Assembly: GCA_964057225.1 (NCBI GenBank)
Contig: OZ059899.1
Coordinates: 15,810,001 to 15,874,000, forward strand
Origin: Auanema rhodensis
Taxonomy: Eukaryota; Animalia; Nematoda
Direction: 5' to 3'
Length of the DNA stretch: 64,000 bases
Within the stretch, counting starts at the first letter, position 1. Each line of letters begins with the position of its first letter. Of this stretch, positions 2,025 to 42,130 are shown piece after piece. A program made the translations under genes and the position numbers. The notes under the pieces are model-generated. The model saw nothing but the letters and a program-made list of their open reading frames with translations. It did not search any database and was not told where the DNA came from.

Positions 2025-3377
2025 TACCCTCTATGGTCTTAGATTTTCCGATTAAATTTTGGCCATGTCAGCACCACGTATGTTTTACCCAGAGGGATAA
2101 GCAACAGCTGAATCAGTTTGAAATTATAGTTGAGGGATAATAGACAGATAAACTGATAAACAACCATATAAACATGGTATTACGATACAAGCTGAAAAGC
2201 TACAAATGTGAAATTTCATGAAAAGCTGGAAAATATGTGATGAAGGAAGGTTATGATGTTTGCTCTTTCAAAAGATAATTGAAGAATATACATATGGTTA
2301 AGATACATTACGTCTTATTTTGGTTGAAAGATGGATGCGTCAATGGTTCGTCGTCGTCGTCTTTCTATCTGACTAAACATATTTCCCCATGAGAAATCTA
2401 AAATCGTGGGAGGGTTAAACGGGTAATCAATCTTGATCTTTAAGCTATGAAAGTCATATCTCAAAAAAAAATTCTTTCGTTGCCATGTAATAATCTAATA
2501 ATTTATCTTTTTCTCTTATTCATTCTTTATTTTATGATGAAAATGACATAGTTGACCATGTACTATTATATGGTTCTTTGCGCTTGTCTCTCAGTTAACT
2601 GGAAGACACTCTCTTTACATTGTGTGCTCCATCTTTGCTGCTCTGTCCACTCTTTCGCCCTTTTCCTTTTTTCTCGTTTTCCCCAATTCCTCCAACATTA
2701 TTGGGGAGTGAAATCAAACGGCAAGATACGCTTCAAACTTTATATATATATATATATATATATGGTTAAAGAAAGAGAGAGAGAGAAAACCAGGAAAAAT
2801 GAAGAACAAAGAGATGGCTGCAGAGAAAAAAAAAAGAAAAAATGGAAGGAAAATCAGCTTTGAACATGGGAACAGATTATATTTTGCTGTTTTACATAGA
2901 TAGAGCAAACGATGACGTAGATCAGTACAACAACAGCTAACTGCAATGAAGCTATATTGTATATAAACAACTTATACAAATCAGCTCAAGAAATTTTGTT
3001 CTTGTTTTCTTTTTTTTTTTCGAAAAATCTTGTGCAAAATGAAATCAAACATGATACGATCCAAAGAAGATATAAAGTGAAAAAGACTTATGTTTTTCAT
3101 AATTTTTATCATTTTCCCTATACAGTATAAACATAAAAATGATGTTTTTCTTACGAAAGTTATTTAATGACAATTTACTGAAACAACTCATTCAAACATT
3201 CTTTTTCAAAATAAAAAATATAAAATACAATAATCTTCTATATACTATGTGTATAGTTATAGATATTATCTTTAACTAGATTTTATATATTGTATAGTTA
3301 GTGATGAATTTTCCACTGTTTACTCTTGCATAGTTTATTGTGTTAAATTGTCGTTAACCCTCTCATCCCTTGATATT

Positions 3378-30164: not shown

Positions 30165-34777
<4,613 letters not shown>

Positions 34778-35065
34778 ATAGAAAATCAAAATATTTTATG
34801 TCATGAATAATTAACCGAGAGCTTTTTGTTCCCCATTGTTGTCTATTTTTTGCCCAATATCTATGATTGTTTTATTTTCTAAAAGATAACTGTTGAAATT
34901 TTTACGAGCATTGATCTCGTCGTCATGAACTTTTGAAACGAAAAATGTCATTGAATTTATCTTTACCTCAATATATATATACATATATATGTTTATATTT
35001 TTACACATACACGCACATATATAATGTCTTGTTTCCAAGCTCTGAAGAATTAATATATTTTTATT

Positions 35066-35179
35066 AATAAAAATCTTTGGAATAATTCAATTGTTTTACT
35101 TTGATGTACATTAATACGGTACTAACCATAATTATCAAATCGATGTAACAAGTGTCGCCGCATCTTCATTTCATTTCAG
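35066..35179 (+). promoter_or_regulatory. Operon-type intercistronic region (poly(A) signal to trans-splice acceptor)
   Basis: AATAAA 35066-71, U-rich tract with TACTTT 35097-35102, TTTCAG 35174-79, ATG at 35198. The ~100-nt spacing is typical of SL2 operons. Confidence 0.65.
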
Positions 35180-35197
35180 ATTTCGCAGTATCTGTGT

Positions 35198-35659
35198 ATG
35201 ACTGAATTAGAGGAACTTGAAAAACTTCTTTTCTTTCTTTCTAGAACTAAGGTATAACGAATTTTATAAGTGCTTTAATGAATTATTTACTAAAGGATAG
35301 CCACGTTTACGTTCAGGATACAGGCAGTAGTGCATACTTTAAGAAGCCTACTACTAACGTGATAGCTGAAACACGAAGTAAGTATCAAATGGGAAAAAAA
35401 TATATAGACATCTAGGTTTCTTGAAGATAAATTCGAAAATTTTTCTTTTATTTTAGTTGTTCGTTCTTATATTTTTTGAGAACTGCAACCAACCGCTCAT
35501 CGTTTAATCAAAAATTTGAAATGAGTAATAAATGTATTTGCCACGTGTTTCACGTATAGTTATAGATATCCACATTTAAACTTTTTAAATTATTTGGTGC
35601 ATCAGGTTTTTTTAGAAAAAATAGCACATCTGAAGAAGCAATCCATCCAGAAACAGTAA
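35198..35659 (+). CDS. 59-aa spliced microprotein, prefoldin-beta/ASDURF-like, directly upstream of ALG1
   Basis: Exons 35198-35251, 35296-35377 and 35616-35659, all GT-AG and in frame: MTELEELEKLLFFLSRTK|DSHVYVQDTGSSAYFKKPTTNVIAETR|KKIAHLKKQSIQKQ*. Helix, VY..Q..S..YF hairpin, helix pattern. Confidence 0.72.
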
Positions 35660-35663
35660 CGTT

Positions 35664-37818
35664 ATGACTAGTTCTAAAAAAGCCGTTGTTGTTGTACTGG
35701 GGGACATCGGGCGGAGCCCACGGATGTGCTATCATTCGTATTCTCTTGCACAAGAGTTGAATTATGATGTTACCATAATAGGCTATTTAGACACTCGACC
35801 TCATTTTAGTATTGATGGGCATCCTAAGATTAAGTAAATATCTTTTTACTTTATATGGAAATGTATATTAAATATTTAGATGTAAGCCATTGGCTTCACC
35901 TCCTGATATTTTGAGTAAACTTCCAGGAACTTTTCAATTGGGTATTAAGTTTATATGGACCTTTTTCCAGCTTTTTTGGGCTTTGCTAATTGGGTAAAAT
36001 GATTTTATTTCTTTATCATGAAATCGGAAATATTGTAGTACCAGTGTTTCTCTGGATTTGATTCTTCTTCAAAACCCTCCTGCCATACCTACAATGCTTG
36101 TCTGTTGGATGGTAATTATAATGAATAAATGAATATATTCTTATATTTTAAAATTAATTGCAGATTTCTCGCTTAAAAGGCGCAAAATTTGTAATTGATT
36201 GGCATAATTATATGTATACTGTTATGACGGATAAATGGAGTAAGTTTAAATCAATGTCTGAGCAAATTGGCAATTAAGGGAACTAACTTAAAGGCTTTTT
36301 ATGAAATATGTATATATATTCGGTTGATTTCGATTGTATTTTAGAATTAGGAAAGTTAGATCTTTCGCCAGAATCTTCCCATGAACCTGAGCCTTCTAAA
36401 GATACGTCAACAGTGAAGAAAAGACCCGGAAAAGATGTAAGTTCATGTAATTTGAAGTTACATCTTATTATTGTGATGATATAGCCTTTAATACCTCCTC
36501 GAAAAAAGAAAACACACGAAAGGAAGGAGAAAAAGTCCACTAAACGAAGGTTGTTTTCTTAAAATATTGAATTAATTCTTTCAATTTCTGTTAAAGAATT
36601 GTCGAATTTGTTTATAAATGGGAAGGATACTTTGGTCGTCTTGCTGACGGAGCACTATGTGTTACTAGGGCAATGAGGGAAAACCTCGCATCCAGTTGGG
36701 GCATCAGAGCCGCCGTTCTATACGATCGACCTCCAAGTTGGTCTTTCGGTGAAGTGGCTGATGCTGAGAAACATGAACTGTTCATGCGCCTCGGCGCTAC
36801 TCCAGATGGCAAGGTATTTCAAGCGAATCCAGAGACAAATGGTGAGTTAGAGCTTAACGAATTCAAGTGAGAACTTAGAATCCCTTAGAAAGTCGTTTTA
36901 CTTCATTGGAAAATGAGGAAGTACTCTGGAACACAACACGACCGTTGATCGTGATCTCGTCAACAAGTTGGACCCCAGATGAAGACTTCTCCATCTTATT
37001 GGATGCTGCTATCAAGTATAACGATGTGGCCAGACTATGTAGAAATGAGTTCGCTTATTTGATGGATTTAGTTTTTTCACTCTATTCAATTTCAGTTCTC
37101 CTGAAAATTACTTACCAAACCTTCTCATGATAATCACTGGACGTGGCGAAGAGAAAGAGTATTATTTAGATCGTATTAGACGCTTACATTTAGAAAAAGT
37201 AGAGGTGAAAATCCTTTTTCAATCTAAAATTTGAATATATTAATCTATAGTTCTTAACGCCATGGCTGGAAGCCGAAGATTATCCCAAAATGCTAGCAGC
37301 TTCTGATATCGGAGTTTCTTTGCATACTTCAACATCAGGTATACTTATAGTTTATGGCTGTGTTCATACAAAATAAGAACAAATTTTGCTCAGGCCTTGA
37401 TCTACCTATGAAAGCTGTTGATATGCTTGGCTCCGGTATTCCAGTTCTTGCTAAGCGCTTTGATTGTATAGGAGAACTCATCCAAGAAGATGTCAATGGG
37501 CATCTTTTCGATAATTCGTCGGATCTTTTCCGCATTCTTTTATCTCTGGCTACTGGATTTCCAAAACACTCCGAGGTTCACTTCCCTTAAACTTTCGTCC
37601 AAACTTCTATACTTTAGACACTCAATAAACTCAAGCTCAATGTCCAATCGGACAAGCTGCCAAGTTGGGAAGAGAATTGGAAAACGTCTGTCGTGTCAGT
37701 TGTAACACCGGAGAGAAATATTCATTTTGATAGAATTCTAGCTAAGTAAATATGAACTTCCGTGATTTTATAACTTCCTGGCCGTTTCAGTGAGCCATTA
37801 ACAGATAGTGACGATTAA
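35664..37818 (+). CDS. algn-1: Chitobiosyldiphosphodolichol beta-mannosyltransferase ALG1
   Basis: Contains [58 protein letters not shown] and [22 protein letters not shown]. Starts without an obvious N-terminal TM helix. Confidence 0.95.
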
Positions 37819-38025: not shown

Positions 38026-38907
38026 TTATGCAGCTTCATTACTTTGCGTAGTTTGTTCTTCTATTGAACTTGGTAGATAGCGAACTTTTTTGCGGAAAAT
38101 ATTCTCATTAGCCAGAAAATGCTCAGCCTGATCATGGGTCCACTTAATTATCTAAAGCAAAGCTGTAAATCTAAAGCTAAATGGTAATTACTTTTTCCGT
38201 GATTCTATGATCGCCCAATTCTGGAAGATTGTGGTTATGCTTGTGGGAAGGACCAGCTTGAAATCCTGCACGTTCGTCAATCTTAATAGAAATTCATGAG
38301 CGGGAAGGCCCTAACAGTCGGTAATTAATGGAAAATATTGTTTTCCAACTAGAATATTTTGGATGTACCTTAACAAAATATTGAATAAGACCGGGATTAT
38401 CTTCGTATCGTTGACAAACGTGATGAATAATGCCATCATCTACTGTTTCACCTATGTTCATGAGAATGCCATCATTTGTCTCGTTGGAATAGTAACAACC
38501 TGAGAGTATGTTCCAATATTTTACATCATATCTCTTAGTTGAAGCTTGCCTGTTACCCATTGTCCTGTCTCTAAACATTTCCATTGGAAACGATCTTTTC
38601 TATAAATCTCTTCGATGCGTCTTAGCGTCCCATCAACAAAGCAATGTGGTTCTATATAAAGAAAACAGAAGAACACGTATCATTAGTCATGTTGTTCGTT
38701 ATTCACATACCCGATTCTATTCTTAAAGCTATGTCGTCAACAGAGCAGGAATGCCAAAGATCATTGATAGAACGATTTTCACCAACTTTGACAAATCCAC
38801 CACCTTGTATTTCACATCCCATGAATAAGGCATCGGCTCTAAAGCAACATAAAGGTGAATCGAGAACTGAAGACGAATGATGGTTAGATGAGATTATTTT
38901 CTTGAGA

Positions 38908-38995
<88 letters not shown>

Positions 38996-39601
38996 GGACG
39001 AAGAGTACAATGCTAACTTACCGATCACTACCTTGGCATTCATACTTCCAGGTCTCATCATCAATCCAATTTTCACCTCTTTTACGACAATCACCATACC
39101 AATCCAAGCAATCACATTCGCTATTAACTATAATACTCATACGATCCAACACTAGATTAATTGTTTTTTAAAGGTTTAGGTTCATGACTTAGTCATGATG
39201 AACCAAAAAAAAATGAAAATAAGACTTTGAGTTCACACTGATTATGTTATTTCTTGTGATTGGACGGGTTAGAAAGACTATAATTTGTCTCGATGCTTGA
39301 ATATCATTCAGTCCATTTCGATCGTATAATATTTTCTGGCATATTCTTCCAGAATTCTCCATTTTTTATTTTTGATCTGCCCCCAACTCCCCACCTTTCC
39401 CTAAAATTCACTCAACTTTCTCACTCGAATTTCGTATGAATGAGGGAAAAGCTTGAAATAACTTATAATTCGGAATATGCATAACAAAAGCAAAAAGATG
39501 AACAAACCTGGTGAGAATGAAGCAAATGGACCGGCTATTGGAACGGCTGAAGTCGAAAAGACAACGAAGGCTATTAATGGAAACACATGACCAAGGATCA
39601 T
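38026..39601 (-). CDS. Secreted nematode protein with short Cys-pair beta-repeats (MIG-18 / fibronectin type I-like)
   Basis: Signal peptide MILGHVFPLIAFVVFSTSA. Repeats CLDWYGDCRKRGENWIDDETWKYEC, CEIQGGGFVKVGENRSINDLWHSC, CFVDGTLRRIEEIYRKDRFQWKC and CYYSNETNDGILMNIGETVDDGIIHHVC. Splicing of exons 2-3 is uncertain. Confidence 0.7.
38911..38991. repeat. (GA)~40 microsatellite in an intron
   Basis: Direct reading. It explains the spurious poly-RE and poly-SL ORFs here. Confidence 0.95.
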
Positions 39602-42130
39602 CTGCAGGATGATTTAAACGAAAAAAAAACGAAATCATCTAAATATTATCATCACCATTACAAAGAAATATTGCGTTTTTAAGAAATATAAGAGTTTATG
39701 AGATCAAATGGATTTTTGTCTTGATTGTTATAACTTTTTCCAAGATATTAATCCCTTTACTGGTTCTCTAATATTCTTTTTTAACACCTCAAAGTTTCTC
39801 TTTTCCTCTTTTTCACGTTCTAATTTCCTTTTTTTGTTTGGAATGACTCTAATAGACAATGTATCAACGTTTTTTCTTTTTCTGGACTTCTCTTCCTTGT
39901 CAATTCGTTTACTATTTTCTTTGTTTTTTTCCTTTTTGTCGTTGGTCTTTCTGGTTGCTTTCTGGAATTTGAGAGGAGCCCTGCCTACACAGATTGGTAA
40001 GCGACATGCTGTATCAGCTAGTTGATATGTTGTATATGGAAGTGAGCGTTGAACCAGAATTCGAGACGGGTATCCAACAGACTGACAGCCCAATCAAACT
40101 CAGACGGATCATGTGTGTGTGTGTATGTGTGTGTGCTTGAGTTTTGAAAGTCTTCTTCCGATTCTATACATAGTACTACAACTGCTTCAATTATACAATT
40201 TAAAAAAAAAGGCAGTGTCGCTTTGTTTTTCTGTGACATGTTTCTAAACTGTTCAACTTATTTTCCGAATAGGCATGAAGCTATGCCCTTTTTTAAAGCG
40301 ACCCCCGTAAAATTGAATGCATGCCTTTTAAGAACCAGCTGCATATGTGTGGGCTTGTATCGTCTTTTTTTTAATGTTTGCTGACAATATTTATAAAATG
40401 AAAGGTCATAACATTCGCAGTGCACGCTCAAGTCCAAGTTTTGAATTATGCTGCTAGTATGGAAAGTTCAAACTGTATTTGAACTAGCCAAAGGCCAAAT
40501 ACATATATGCAATGAAAAAGCTATTAATCATCTCAGAGGTTTTCAATAATATCAATTTGTTTTGAATATATCTGAATACTTAAGATTAAGACAGAGGGAG
40601 AGAAGGGGGGAAACACAAGGTGGCAGATGAGAAGTAATGTAGTAAGCAAGGGTAGCCAATCTCAACTAATACTCTATAACATGTCGGTCATATTTAAATA
40701 TATTTCCGATCATTTATTTTTAAACGAAAATAATATAAATACTATACAAACTAAAGTTATTCCAAACTATTTTTCATAAGCCTTATACTACAGAGATTGT
40801 GTGTAAGATATGTAGTAGTAAAGTAGGATAGAGAGCTTGTTCTAATAGTTGTACGCAAGCGTTAAGTTATAAATCATTTGTCACCCCATATTTGAGCAAT
40901 TCTCAGCAATTCTATCTGTATATACATACATGTATGTATCTCTGTATGTATGTGTATGTGTATGTGTGTGTGTTATGTCTATGTATATACATAGATGTCC
41001 ATCTGTATATTTTTTTTATTCATTTGTGTTGGTCAACTTAATTTACTTTACCACTTACTTACTCACTCACTCATTCACTTTTCACATTTTTCAGCTTCAA
41101 CATTCATCACGCACTCTATCCTACTTCTTTCTTTCATATTGTACTGTTTCTTTTATTGCTATTTCCAGCTATTACTACTACAACAACTAACTACAACTGC
41201 TGCTGCTGCTTCTGCTGTTGCTGCAATTGCTGACTCCCTTCAGTTTTCATTATTGTAGCTTAGCTTCATTTAGTAGTTTGAACTAGAGCTTATTATGTTT
41301 TTTTCGCGCCATCTACTTAAAATACGTAGTAAAAATAATAAAATTATATAATAAATTATTAAATCTTAATTAATTCAAAAGAATAAGCATAATTAACAGC
41401 GCCTACATACATATAACGATTTTGATAATCTTCCTACCTATCGTCCTGCCTCTCTATTTGTAAACAAAGATAAATTAGAGAGAATTCAAAACAAATAATA
41501 AAGTTACTAAGTAGTTACGTATAATGCATATCTTGGTAAGTCAAATCAAGTATGCTAAGCTAATGTATTATATATATATATATATATATATCAGTGCTTT
41601 AAAGATAATTTATTAAGAATAATACTATCAGCAGCTCTATTAAGATGCAGGAAACAGTGATATTTGCTAAATCATTTGTATAATTATGTATATGTATTAA
41701 AGAAGGGGGGGGGGAAGGAAGGAAAATATCATTTGTATAATTTCATACAAATGGTAATTCAAAAGGAAAATTTGAATGCAACCGAATGAACGAACGACCG
41801 ACCGATCTCATTTGAATTTTTCGTGCAAAATGATTTGTTCTGATGATGATAATGCAGATGGATAAATTACCTGTGATGACGTGAATGACGTGAAAAATGT
41901 GATAATTTCGTATGCAAATGAGTTGTTACACAGAAGAATAAACGATCAGTTGTTATTGTGATAGTAATAGATGTAGAAGTAGTTGATTTGTAATAGTAAT
42001 AGTAGTAATAGTTAAAAGACTTCTTCCTAATAGACTAGAAAAAAGGCGTGAGAATTAAAAAGCTAAGTGATAGATAATTGTTTAGATAAAAGCTTGCTTG
42101 TAATATGAATTTTAGAACATGATAATGCTG

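Follow-up and report, generated by a model that had tools for sequence, protein, structure and literature searches.

The contig OZ059899.1 of the nematode Auanema rhodensis (GenBank assembly GCA_964057225.1) carries, in the 64,000-nucleotide (nt) stretch analyzed here (positions 15,810,001 to 15,874,000 of the forward strand, hereafter the window), a short spliced open reading frame (ORF) immediately upstream of the ALG1 gene. Judging from comparison with other nematodes, the 59-amino acid (aa) product of this ORF is a prefoldin-beta-like microprotein of the ASDURF family, and it is very probably encoded by a genuine gene that forms the upstream cistron of a bicistronic ALG1 mRNA. An earlier note on this DNA had proposed such an arrangement, and the acceptor, start codon, three exons and TAA-CGTT-ATG junction that it described all proved correct. 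Positions given without further label are those of the window, on the plus strand.

Joining the three GT-AG exons in silico yields a coding sequence of 180 nt, whose 59-aa translation exactly matches the peptide quoted in that note. The start codon at 35198, with T at position -3, is the first ATG after a TTTCAG acceptor, with none in between, and opens exon 1 (35198-35251; donor AAG/GTATAA), which encodes M1-K18, the N-terminal helix, and aligns with the ELEKL..L.R segment of the orthologues described below. Intron 1 (35252-35295; 44 nt, phase 0, acceptor CTAAAG) is followed by exon 2 (35296-35377; donor GAA/GTAAGT), which encodes D19-R44 plus one further nucleotide and comprises the beta-hairpin (HVYVQ and AYFKK), the beginning of the C-terminal helix, and all three residues that are invariant in the family (V22, Y23 and F33). 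Intron 2 (35378-35615; 238 nt, phase 1) runs from GTAAGT to the acceptor TTTTTTTAG, and the coding part of exon 3 (35616-35659) contributes K45-Q59 and the TAA stop codon at 35657-35659; its KKIAHLKK resembles KKLAQLKK in Auanema sp. JU1783 and KAIASLKK in Diploscapter. Only the 4-nt intercistronic spacer CGTT (35660-35663) then precedes the ATG of ALG1, the algn-1 homologue, which has G at -3 and opens a first coding exon at 35664-35833 in a gene that runs to about 37812. A single exon thus ends the microprotein and opens the ALG1 coding sequence, as the earlier note had claimed and this layout bears out.

An ORF of this length is easily obtained by accident. With as many as two GT..AG introns permitted, a spliced ORF of at least 59 aa turns up in 39 of 40 shuffles of the intergenic DNA, so the case rests on cross-species comparison: the window ORF by itself is not beyond chance, and it is far beyond chance once its orthologues are compared. 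Relatives were gathered from a list of nematode ALG1 sequences, as genomic loci and as Logan transcript contigs. The closest annotated ALG1, identified by a profile-free scan with an ALG1 exon, is P0001 of Auanema sp. JU1783, to which the window ALG1 is 88% identical in exon 1 (residues 1-57) and about 80% identical across the well-aligned exons.

In spliced transcript contigs of four other nematodes, a homologous ORF lies directly 5' of the ALG1 ORF. These are L002 (ORF at 31-231, 66 aa, with its stop 5 nt before the ALG1 ATG), L003 (a 5'-truncated ORF of 51 aa that ends at 156, 2 nt before the ALG1 ATG), L008 from a diplogastrid (61 aa, 26-nt spacer) and L010 from an ascarid-like clade III species (61 aa, 29-nt spacer). 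Two genomes add the exon structure: in Diploscapter pachys (L006) the exons lie at 2698-2763, 2821-2902 and from 2948 onward, with a TGA GGG ATG junction, and in Angiostrongylus costaricensis (L007) at 2501-2578, 2832-2913 and from 3013 onward, with stop and start overlapping as TAATG (about 3066-3070). Intron 1 is in phase 0 and at the same site in the window, in Diploscapter (L006 2764-2820) and in A. costaricensis (L007 2579-2831), in the latter two immediately 5' of the xxFVY strand, as in the window; intron 2 is in phase 1 at about the same place in the C-terminal helix in all three. Orthologous peptides of 61-71 aa directly upstream of ALG1 thus occur in nematode clades III and V, and presence in clade IV is indicated by one fused Steinernema annotation. 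The downstream cistron is ALG1 in eight of the eight loci or transcripts that bear the microprotein, in agreement with the host gene named in the earlier note. The bicistronic organization that it proposed is seen at the transcript level in four species, with the window contributing the corresponding genomic layout, from which a bicistronic mRNA would be expected there too. Conservation of the ORF in related species, which it had made a test of its proposal, is likewise seen in several nematodes.

The family follows the pattern ELE.L..L.R.K..FVY.Q.PGS.VFFREP...., and a hidden Markov model (HMM) built from it recovers the orthologue ORFs at E values of 1e-10 to 4e-30, with a background of at most about 8.4 bits for everything else in some 8000 six-frame fragments (about 139 kb). 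Among the species that bear the microprotein, the ALG1 proteins are about 45-60% identical, the window peptide and its L002 orthologue are 37% identical, and the relatives other than JU1783 are saturated at synonymous sites. Conservation of the peptide among species whose ALG1 proteins have diverged this far argues that it has been kept by selection over deep divergence.

The nematode family also resembles ASDURF, whose human sequence, as quoted in the earlier note, was confirmed by an exact look-up (P0260). For this comparison we used a nine-sequence nematode alignment (A1) and, on the ASDURF side, mammalian sequences only. An hhalign comparison of A1 with human ASDURF gives a probability of 74% (P 2.7e-5) over 52 columns at about 27% identity, aligning nematode positions 9-60 with human residues 31-83; the alignment is ungapped through the hairpin, where VYRQ..NS.I.F is common to both. 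In hmmsearch, the A1 profile scores human ASDURF at 21.8 bits and the reversed sequence at 1.6 bits, and none of 2000 composition-preserving shuffles rises above 8.9 bits. A profile built without the window and Diploscapter sequences still scores 16.3 bits, and the window peptide alone 13.5 bits, values that none of 2000 shuffles reaches in either case. The relationship to ASDURF that the earlier note had drawn by eye is therefore upheld by the profile, by hhalign and by the window peptide on its own.

Predicted structures point in the same direction. AlphaFold models of two transcript-contiguous orthologues both display a helix, beta-hairpin, helix (H-E-E-H) topology: the L002 model (predicted local distance difference test score, pLDDT, 84) has helices at 2-20 and 41-64 and strands at 25-29 and 36-40, and the L010 model (pLDDT 79) has helices at 3-16 and 39-56 and strands at 23-27 and 34-38. 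When the L002 model was compared with 350,542 PDB chains using Foldseek, the top matches were almost all prefoldin, the best being 1fxk_B (template-modelling score 0.76, root-mean-square deviation (rmsd) 1.2 Å, 57 columns). Re-alignment with VIA covers residues 28-92 of the 109 in 1fxk_B and gives Z 7.4 and rmsd 1.8 Å over 64 residues for the human prefoldin chain 6nr8_1 and Z 6.4-6.9 for archaeal beta subunits, with all matches at 64 residues and rmsd 1.6-1.8 Å. The prefoldin-beta-like fold anticipated in the earlier note is thus the one predicted for both orthologues, with prefoldin beta chains as the closest structures. Canonical beta-prefoldins (archaeal PfdB in 1fxk_B, 2zqm and 2zdi; human PFDN1/2/4/6 in 6nr8 and 7wu7; PF01920) share the same helix-hairpin-helix topology and are the best structural matches, at rmsd 1.2-1.8 Å over 57-64 residues, but no sequence similarity between them and the nematode family is detectable. 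Their coiled-coil arms measure about 35-40 residues each in proteins of 100-130 aa, whereas the nematode helices, at about 14-24 residues, are roughly half as long, and canonical subunits are encoded by ordinary stand-alone genes, unlike the nematode upstream cistron.

Several observations weigh against the interpretation as a conserved ASDURF-family gene. The first concern the ALG1 locus itself. In the close relative Auanema sp. JU1783 (L001:3768-4000) the start codon is kept, but the frame reads MREIVK followed by a stop, and the ORF is destroyed; about 215 nt corresponding to window 35205-35425 are missing, comprising most of exon 1, intron 1, exon 2 and the start of intron 2, and the last exon is retained as RKKLAQLKKQHSEK followed by a stop, 7 nt before the ALG1 ATG. 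(In a MAFFT alignment, a second ACTAAC in exon 2 misaligns the window with the JU1783 intergenic DNA, leaving about the last 170 columns usable.) No homologue was found in the 722-nt jhdm-1/algn-1 gap of Caenorhabditis elegans, the 442-nt jhdm-1/algn-1 gap of C. bovis, the 1283-nt gap of Strongyloides ratti, or the 2.5 kb upstream of ALG1 in Steinernema hermaphroditum. Absence from the ALG1 locus in several species implies that the microprotein is dispensable there or has moved. A tblastn match on the opposite strand in S. hermaphroditum (E 0.25), which does not have the hairpin motif, was rejected.

The remaining points concern the gene model, the fold and the homology. The intron 1 acceptor in the window, CTAAAG, is weak, and its sole support is the conserved position of the intron. 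The AlphaFold models are of the two orthologues and not of the spliced window peptide, and the Z values of the structural matches are modest (below 8), as is usual for about 66 residues, with complete coverage and a consistent family among the matches. At the sequence level, none of the nine family members matches Pfam, including PF01920 (Prefoldin_2), the window peptide matches neither Pfam nor PDB sequences, and the family profile retrieves no canonical prefoldin from 177,635 PDB sequences at E up to 10. The strongylid orthologues alone show no significant similarity to ASDURF. Searching in the opposite direction, with a narrow mammalian ASDURF profile, gives weak scores, although the top two of 7961 fragments are the second exons of Diploscapter and of the window (11 bits each). 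Neither the peptide nor ALG1 exon 1 retrieved anything from 5.8 billion proteins in a word-index search, which depends on shared 5-mers and a length window. Of the expected relationship to prefoldin-beta, then, the match to the ASDURF profile and the structural matches stand, and a sequence match to Pfam or PDB prefoldins does not.

These observations bear on two other explanations. The first is that the ORF arose by chance, or is a purely regulatory upstream ORF (uORF) in the ALG1 leader whose peptide sequence is irrelevant, as might be supposed from the shuffling result, the empty Pfam and PDB searches and the loss of the ORF in JU1783 and Caenorhabditis. We consider this highly improbable, because amino acid sequence, intron positions and predicted fold are all conserved across clades III and V, between which ALG1 itself is only about 45-50% identical, the models are confident, and the family resembles ASDURF. 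The second grants that the microprotein is conserved in nematodes and folds as a prefoldin-beta-like hairpin, but denies that it is truly orthologous to ASDURF: it would be either a lineage-specific offshoot of another beta-prefoldin (PDRG1 or PFD-4, for example) or a mini coiled-coil hairpin that arose by convergence, and its partners could then differ. An identity of only about 27% across 52 columns, an hhalign probability of 74%, the missing signal in the strongylid members alone, the weak reciprocal search and a host gene other than ASNSD1 would all fit such an origin, and PDRG1 lay outside the sequences compared. Nevertheless, the match to ASDURF at 21.8 bits is far above composition-matched shuffles, and its hairpin aligns without gaps through the common VYRQ..NS.I.F. 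As the same profile finds ASDURF and no canonical prefoldin in the PDB, the similarity is specific to ASDURF and not a matter of coiled-coil composition, and we regard a non-orthologous origin as unlikely.

Public annotations suggest a further explanation, namely that the peptide is a genuine N-terminal extension of ALG1. Several ALG1 models do carry it in this form, in Necator (P0153:1-53), A. costaricensis (P0162:1-68), Nippostrongylus brasiliensis (P0159:1-26) and Steinernema glaseri (P0181:1-52), and the 1014-aa model P0006 is a fusion of jhdm-1, the microprotein (513-560) and ALG1. However, a stop codon separates the two ORFs in all four transcript contigs and in the window, the two frames differ in five of the six modelled species, and in most species ALG1 begins exactly at the conserved AVVVLGD motif. 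We give this explanation practically no credence; the stop between the ORFs, together with the difference in frame, marks the fused models as artefacts. In the Diploscapter and Auanema annotations, no gene is called for the microprotein. The comparison exposes a recurring error, in which ALG1 receives a false N-terminal extension in parasitic nematodes (Necator, Angiostrongylus, Nippostrongylus, Steinernema and others) while the microprotein goes unannotated as a gene.

The region between the two start codons has features that bear on how ALG1 is translated. Across six species (1251 nt), the stretch from the microprotein start codon to that of ALG1 is free of further ATGs in every frame, compared with 19.7 predicted by shuffling the bases and 3.5 predicted by recoding the same peptides with synonymous codons (P 0.007). 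Each of the six upstream ATGs has a pyrimidine (T or C) at -3, and each of the six ALG1 ATGs a purine (A or G); the ALG1 ATG of L003 likewise has A at -3. Absent internal ATGs and a pyrimidine at -3 suggest that ALG1 is reached by leaky scanning. Under this mechanism, some ribosomes would initiate the microprotein at its weak-context AUG, and others would scan past it through about 180 nt devoid of AUG to the strong-context ALG1 AUG. Such an arrangement is known from the animal mRNA for MOCS2A and MOCS2B, in which a weak upstream AUG and the lack of intervening AUGs allow two functional proteins to be made by leaky scanning. The MOCS2 proteins are unrelated to the nematode pair, in which, unlike in MOCS2A/MOCS2B, the upstream product is of a chaperone-complex type with no evident link to the downstream glycosyltransferase.

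The stop-to-start distances (-1 in the TAATG overlap, 2, 3, 4, 5, 26 and 29 nt; 4 in the window and -1 to 29 in six other species) are very short in every species, and reinitiation after the nearby stop would be a possible second route to ALG1. That termination and reinitiation should be the main route, in place of leaky scanning, seems to us rather unlikely: not one ATG lies between the two start codons and the upstream one is in a weak context, both of which suggest that ribosomes scan past it, and reinitiation in eukaryotes after ORFs of 60-70 codons is usually inefficient in the absence of special RNA elements. The L002 transcript additionally contains a five-codon mini-uORF, MFHRI (L002:14-34), whose TAA shares nucleotides with the microprotein ATG (TAATG), just as the microprotein stop does with the ALG1 start in A. 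costaricensis.

A different route to ALG1 would be a separate mRNA. In this alternative operon arrangement, the acceptor at 35615 would also be used for spliced leader (SL) trans-splicing, giving an ALG1 mRNA with a 48-nt leader, and an AATAAA at 35527-35532 would end an mRNA that encodes the microprotein alone. The AATAAA lies 83 nt 5' of the strong TTTTTTTAG acceptor, an operon-like spacing, so that intron 2 could act as an intercistronic region; this intron is unusually long (238 nt) and contains a ACCGCTCA block (35492-35499) that is conserved in JU1783 (L001 3852). On the other hand, JU1783 does not share the AATAAA itself, and AT-rich introns often contain such hexamers. The conserved coding part of exon 3 argues that the cis-spliced form matters, cis-spliced bicistronic transcripts are assembled in four species, and the depletion of ATGs with the contrast in AUG context is what leaky scanning predicts. 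We take the separate mRNA seriously as a possibility while doubting it; it competes with the proposed translation step only and is compatible with a real microprotein.

The microprotein and ALG1 would themselves belong to a larger unit. The upstream gene on the same strand is a homologue of jhdm-1 with a JmjC domain, which ends at a stop codon at 34777 and has a likely poly(A) signal, AATAAA, at 35066-35071, which lies in a block conserved with JU1783 (AATAAA at L001 3674). The TTTCAG acceptor (35174-35179), a putative operon-type trans-splice site, follows 108 nt past this AATAAA, and JU1783 has the same arrangement, with its acceptor 88 nt past the AATAAA. A spacing of about 100 nt between AATAAA and acceptor is typical for the downstream gene of a nematode operon. 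The bicistronic mRNA would begin at the putative trans-splice acceptor at 35179, about 100 nt past the jhdm-1 poly(A) signal, and, given that position, the unit would be a downstream operon gene. The 5' ends of L002 and L010 were inspected for SL1-like tails, and the match is too poor to call; an Rfam scan of 34700-35900 returned no matches. In C. elegans, a Logan contig of 4526 nt (L005) joins the 3' part of jhdm-1, the whole unspliced 722-nt gap and spliced algn-1, and may be either an operon precursor or the product of a merge during assembly.

Between the poly(A) signal and the acceptor lies a UACUAAC-like box, CGGTACTAACCA (35117-35128), of which 12 of 12 nucleotides are identical in JU1783 (L001 3705-3716). 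It resembles the UACUAAC branch-point box of yeast and stands about 50 nt 5' of the putative trans-splice acceptor, which is unusual among nematodes; to our knowledge, nematodes in general do not have a branch-point consensus. A role as branch site or intercistronic element may be considered for it, as a guess. Long (GA)n and (GT)n microsatellites lie 3' of ALG1, at 38900-39110 and 40930-41000.

ASDURF is described as the sixth subunit of the URI1 prefoldin-like module of the PAQosome in the statements of PMC8567396 and PMC9406135 that cite Cloutier et al. 2020. Human ASDURF and the nematode protein are alike in being small beta-prefoldin-like products of a spliced upstream ORF on a bicistronic mRNA, and their proximal N-helix, hairpin (VYRQ..NS.IFF in human, VY.Q..GS..F in nematodes) and C-helix align. 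They differ in the host gene, which is ASNSD1 for human ASDURF and ALG1 for the nematode protein, and in size, the nematode proteins (59-71 aa, compared with 96 aa for human ASDURF) representing the ASDURF core without the N-terminal tail of about 28 residues and part of the C-helix. Also unlike human ASDURF, the nematode microprotein ends within a few nucleotides of the main ATG, and its unit is apparently a downstream operon gene. In Arabidopsis, AT1G49245 has been assigned as the plant orthologue of ASDURF, and it co-purifies with UXT, URI, PFD2, PFD6 and PDRG1 (PMC10893143). There it is listed as a stand-alone locus and not as a uORF. The existence of a plant orthologue shows that the family is old and widespread, and with the Arabidopsis member listed as its own locus, the ASNSD1 host characterizes the vertebrate locus and not the protein family as such.

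The nematode protein is a new member of the ASDURF family, and the new element is its ALG1 host in place of ASNSD1, in an operon context. In line with the earlier note's statement that it was not aware of any description, our literature search found no paper on ASDURF in nematodes or on a uORF on algn-1. Its homology to ASDURF predicts that the protein serves as sixth beta-type subunit in the URI1 prefoldin-like module, where its hairpin would join the beta-barrel formed with URI1, UXT, PDRG1, PFD-2 and PFD-6, as ASDURF does in humans. PFD-6, PFD-2, URI-1 and the UXT homologue F35H10.6 are present in C. elegans (PMC6295163), and the microprotein is a candidate for the missing subunit of the nematode prefoldin-like (PAQosome) module, so far studied in C. 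elegans without one. Its apparent repeated loss, in JU1783, Caenorhabditis and Strongyloides, would offer natural knock-outs for probing what this subunit does.

More generally, ASDURF-type proteins can be upstream cistrons on different host genes, which opens the question of why they are encoded by uORFs to comparative and genetic tests, and the nematode locus is a clean natural example of a bicistronic mRNA that is conserved in trans-splicing animals and bears sequence signatures of leaky scanning. We put forward very tentatively, and with more doubt than conviction, that one and the same prefoldin-like subunit either remained an upstream cistron or became one independently on two unrelated hosts, ASNSD1 in vertebrates and ALG1 in nematodes. 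If this were true, translation from a leader ORF would itself have been selected for this subunit, for example because its amount is set by scanning-dependent translation, and in nematodes the output of the first mannosyltransferase of the N-glycan precursor would be coupled, ribosome by ribosome, to the synthesis of a PAQosome subunit.

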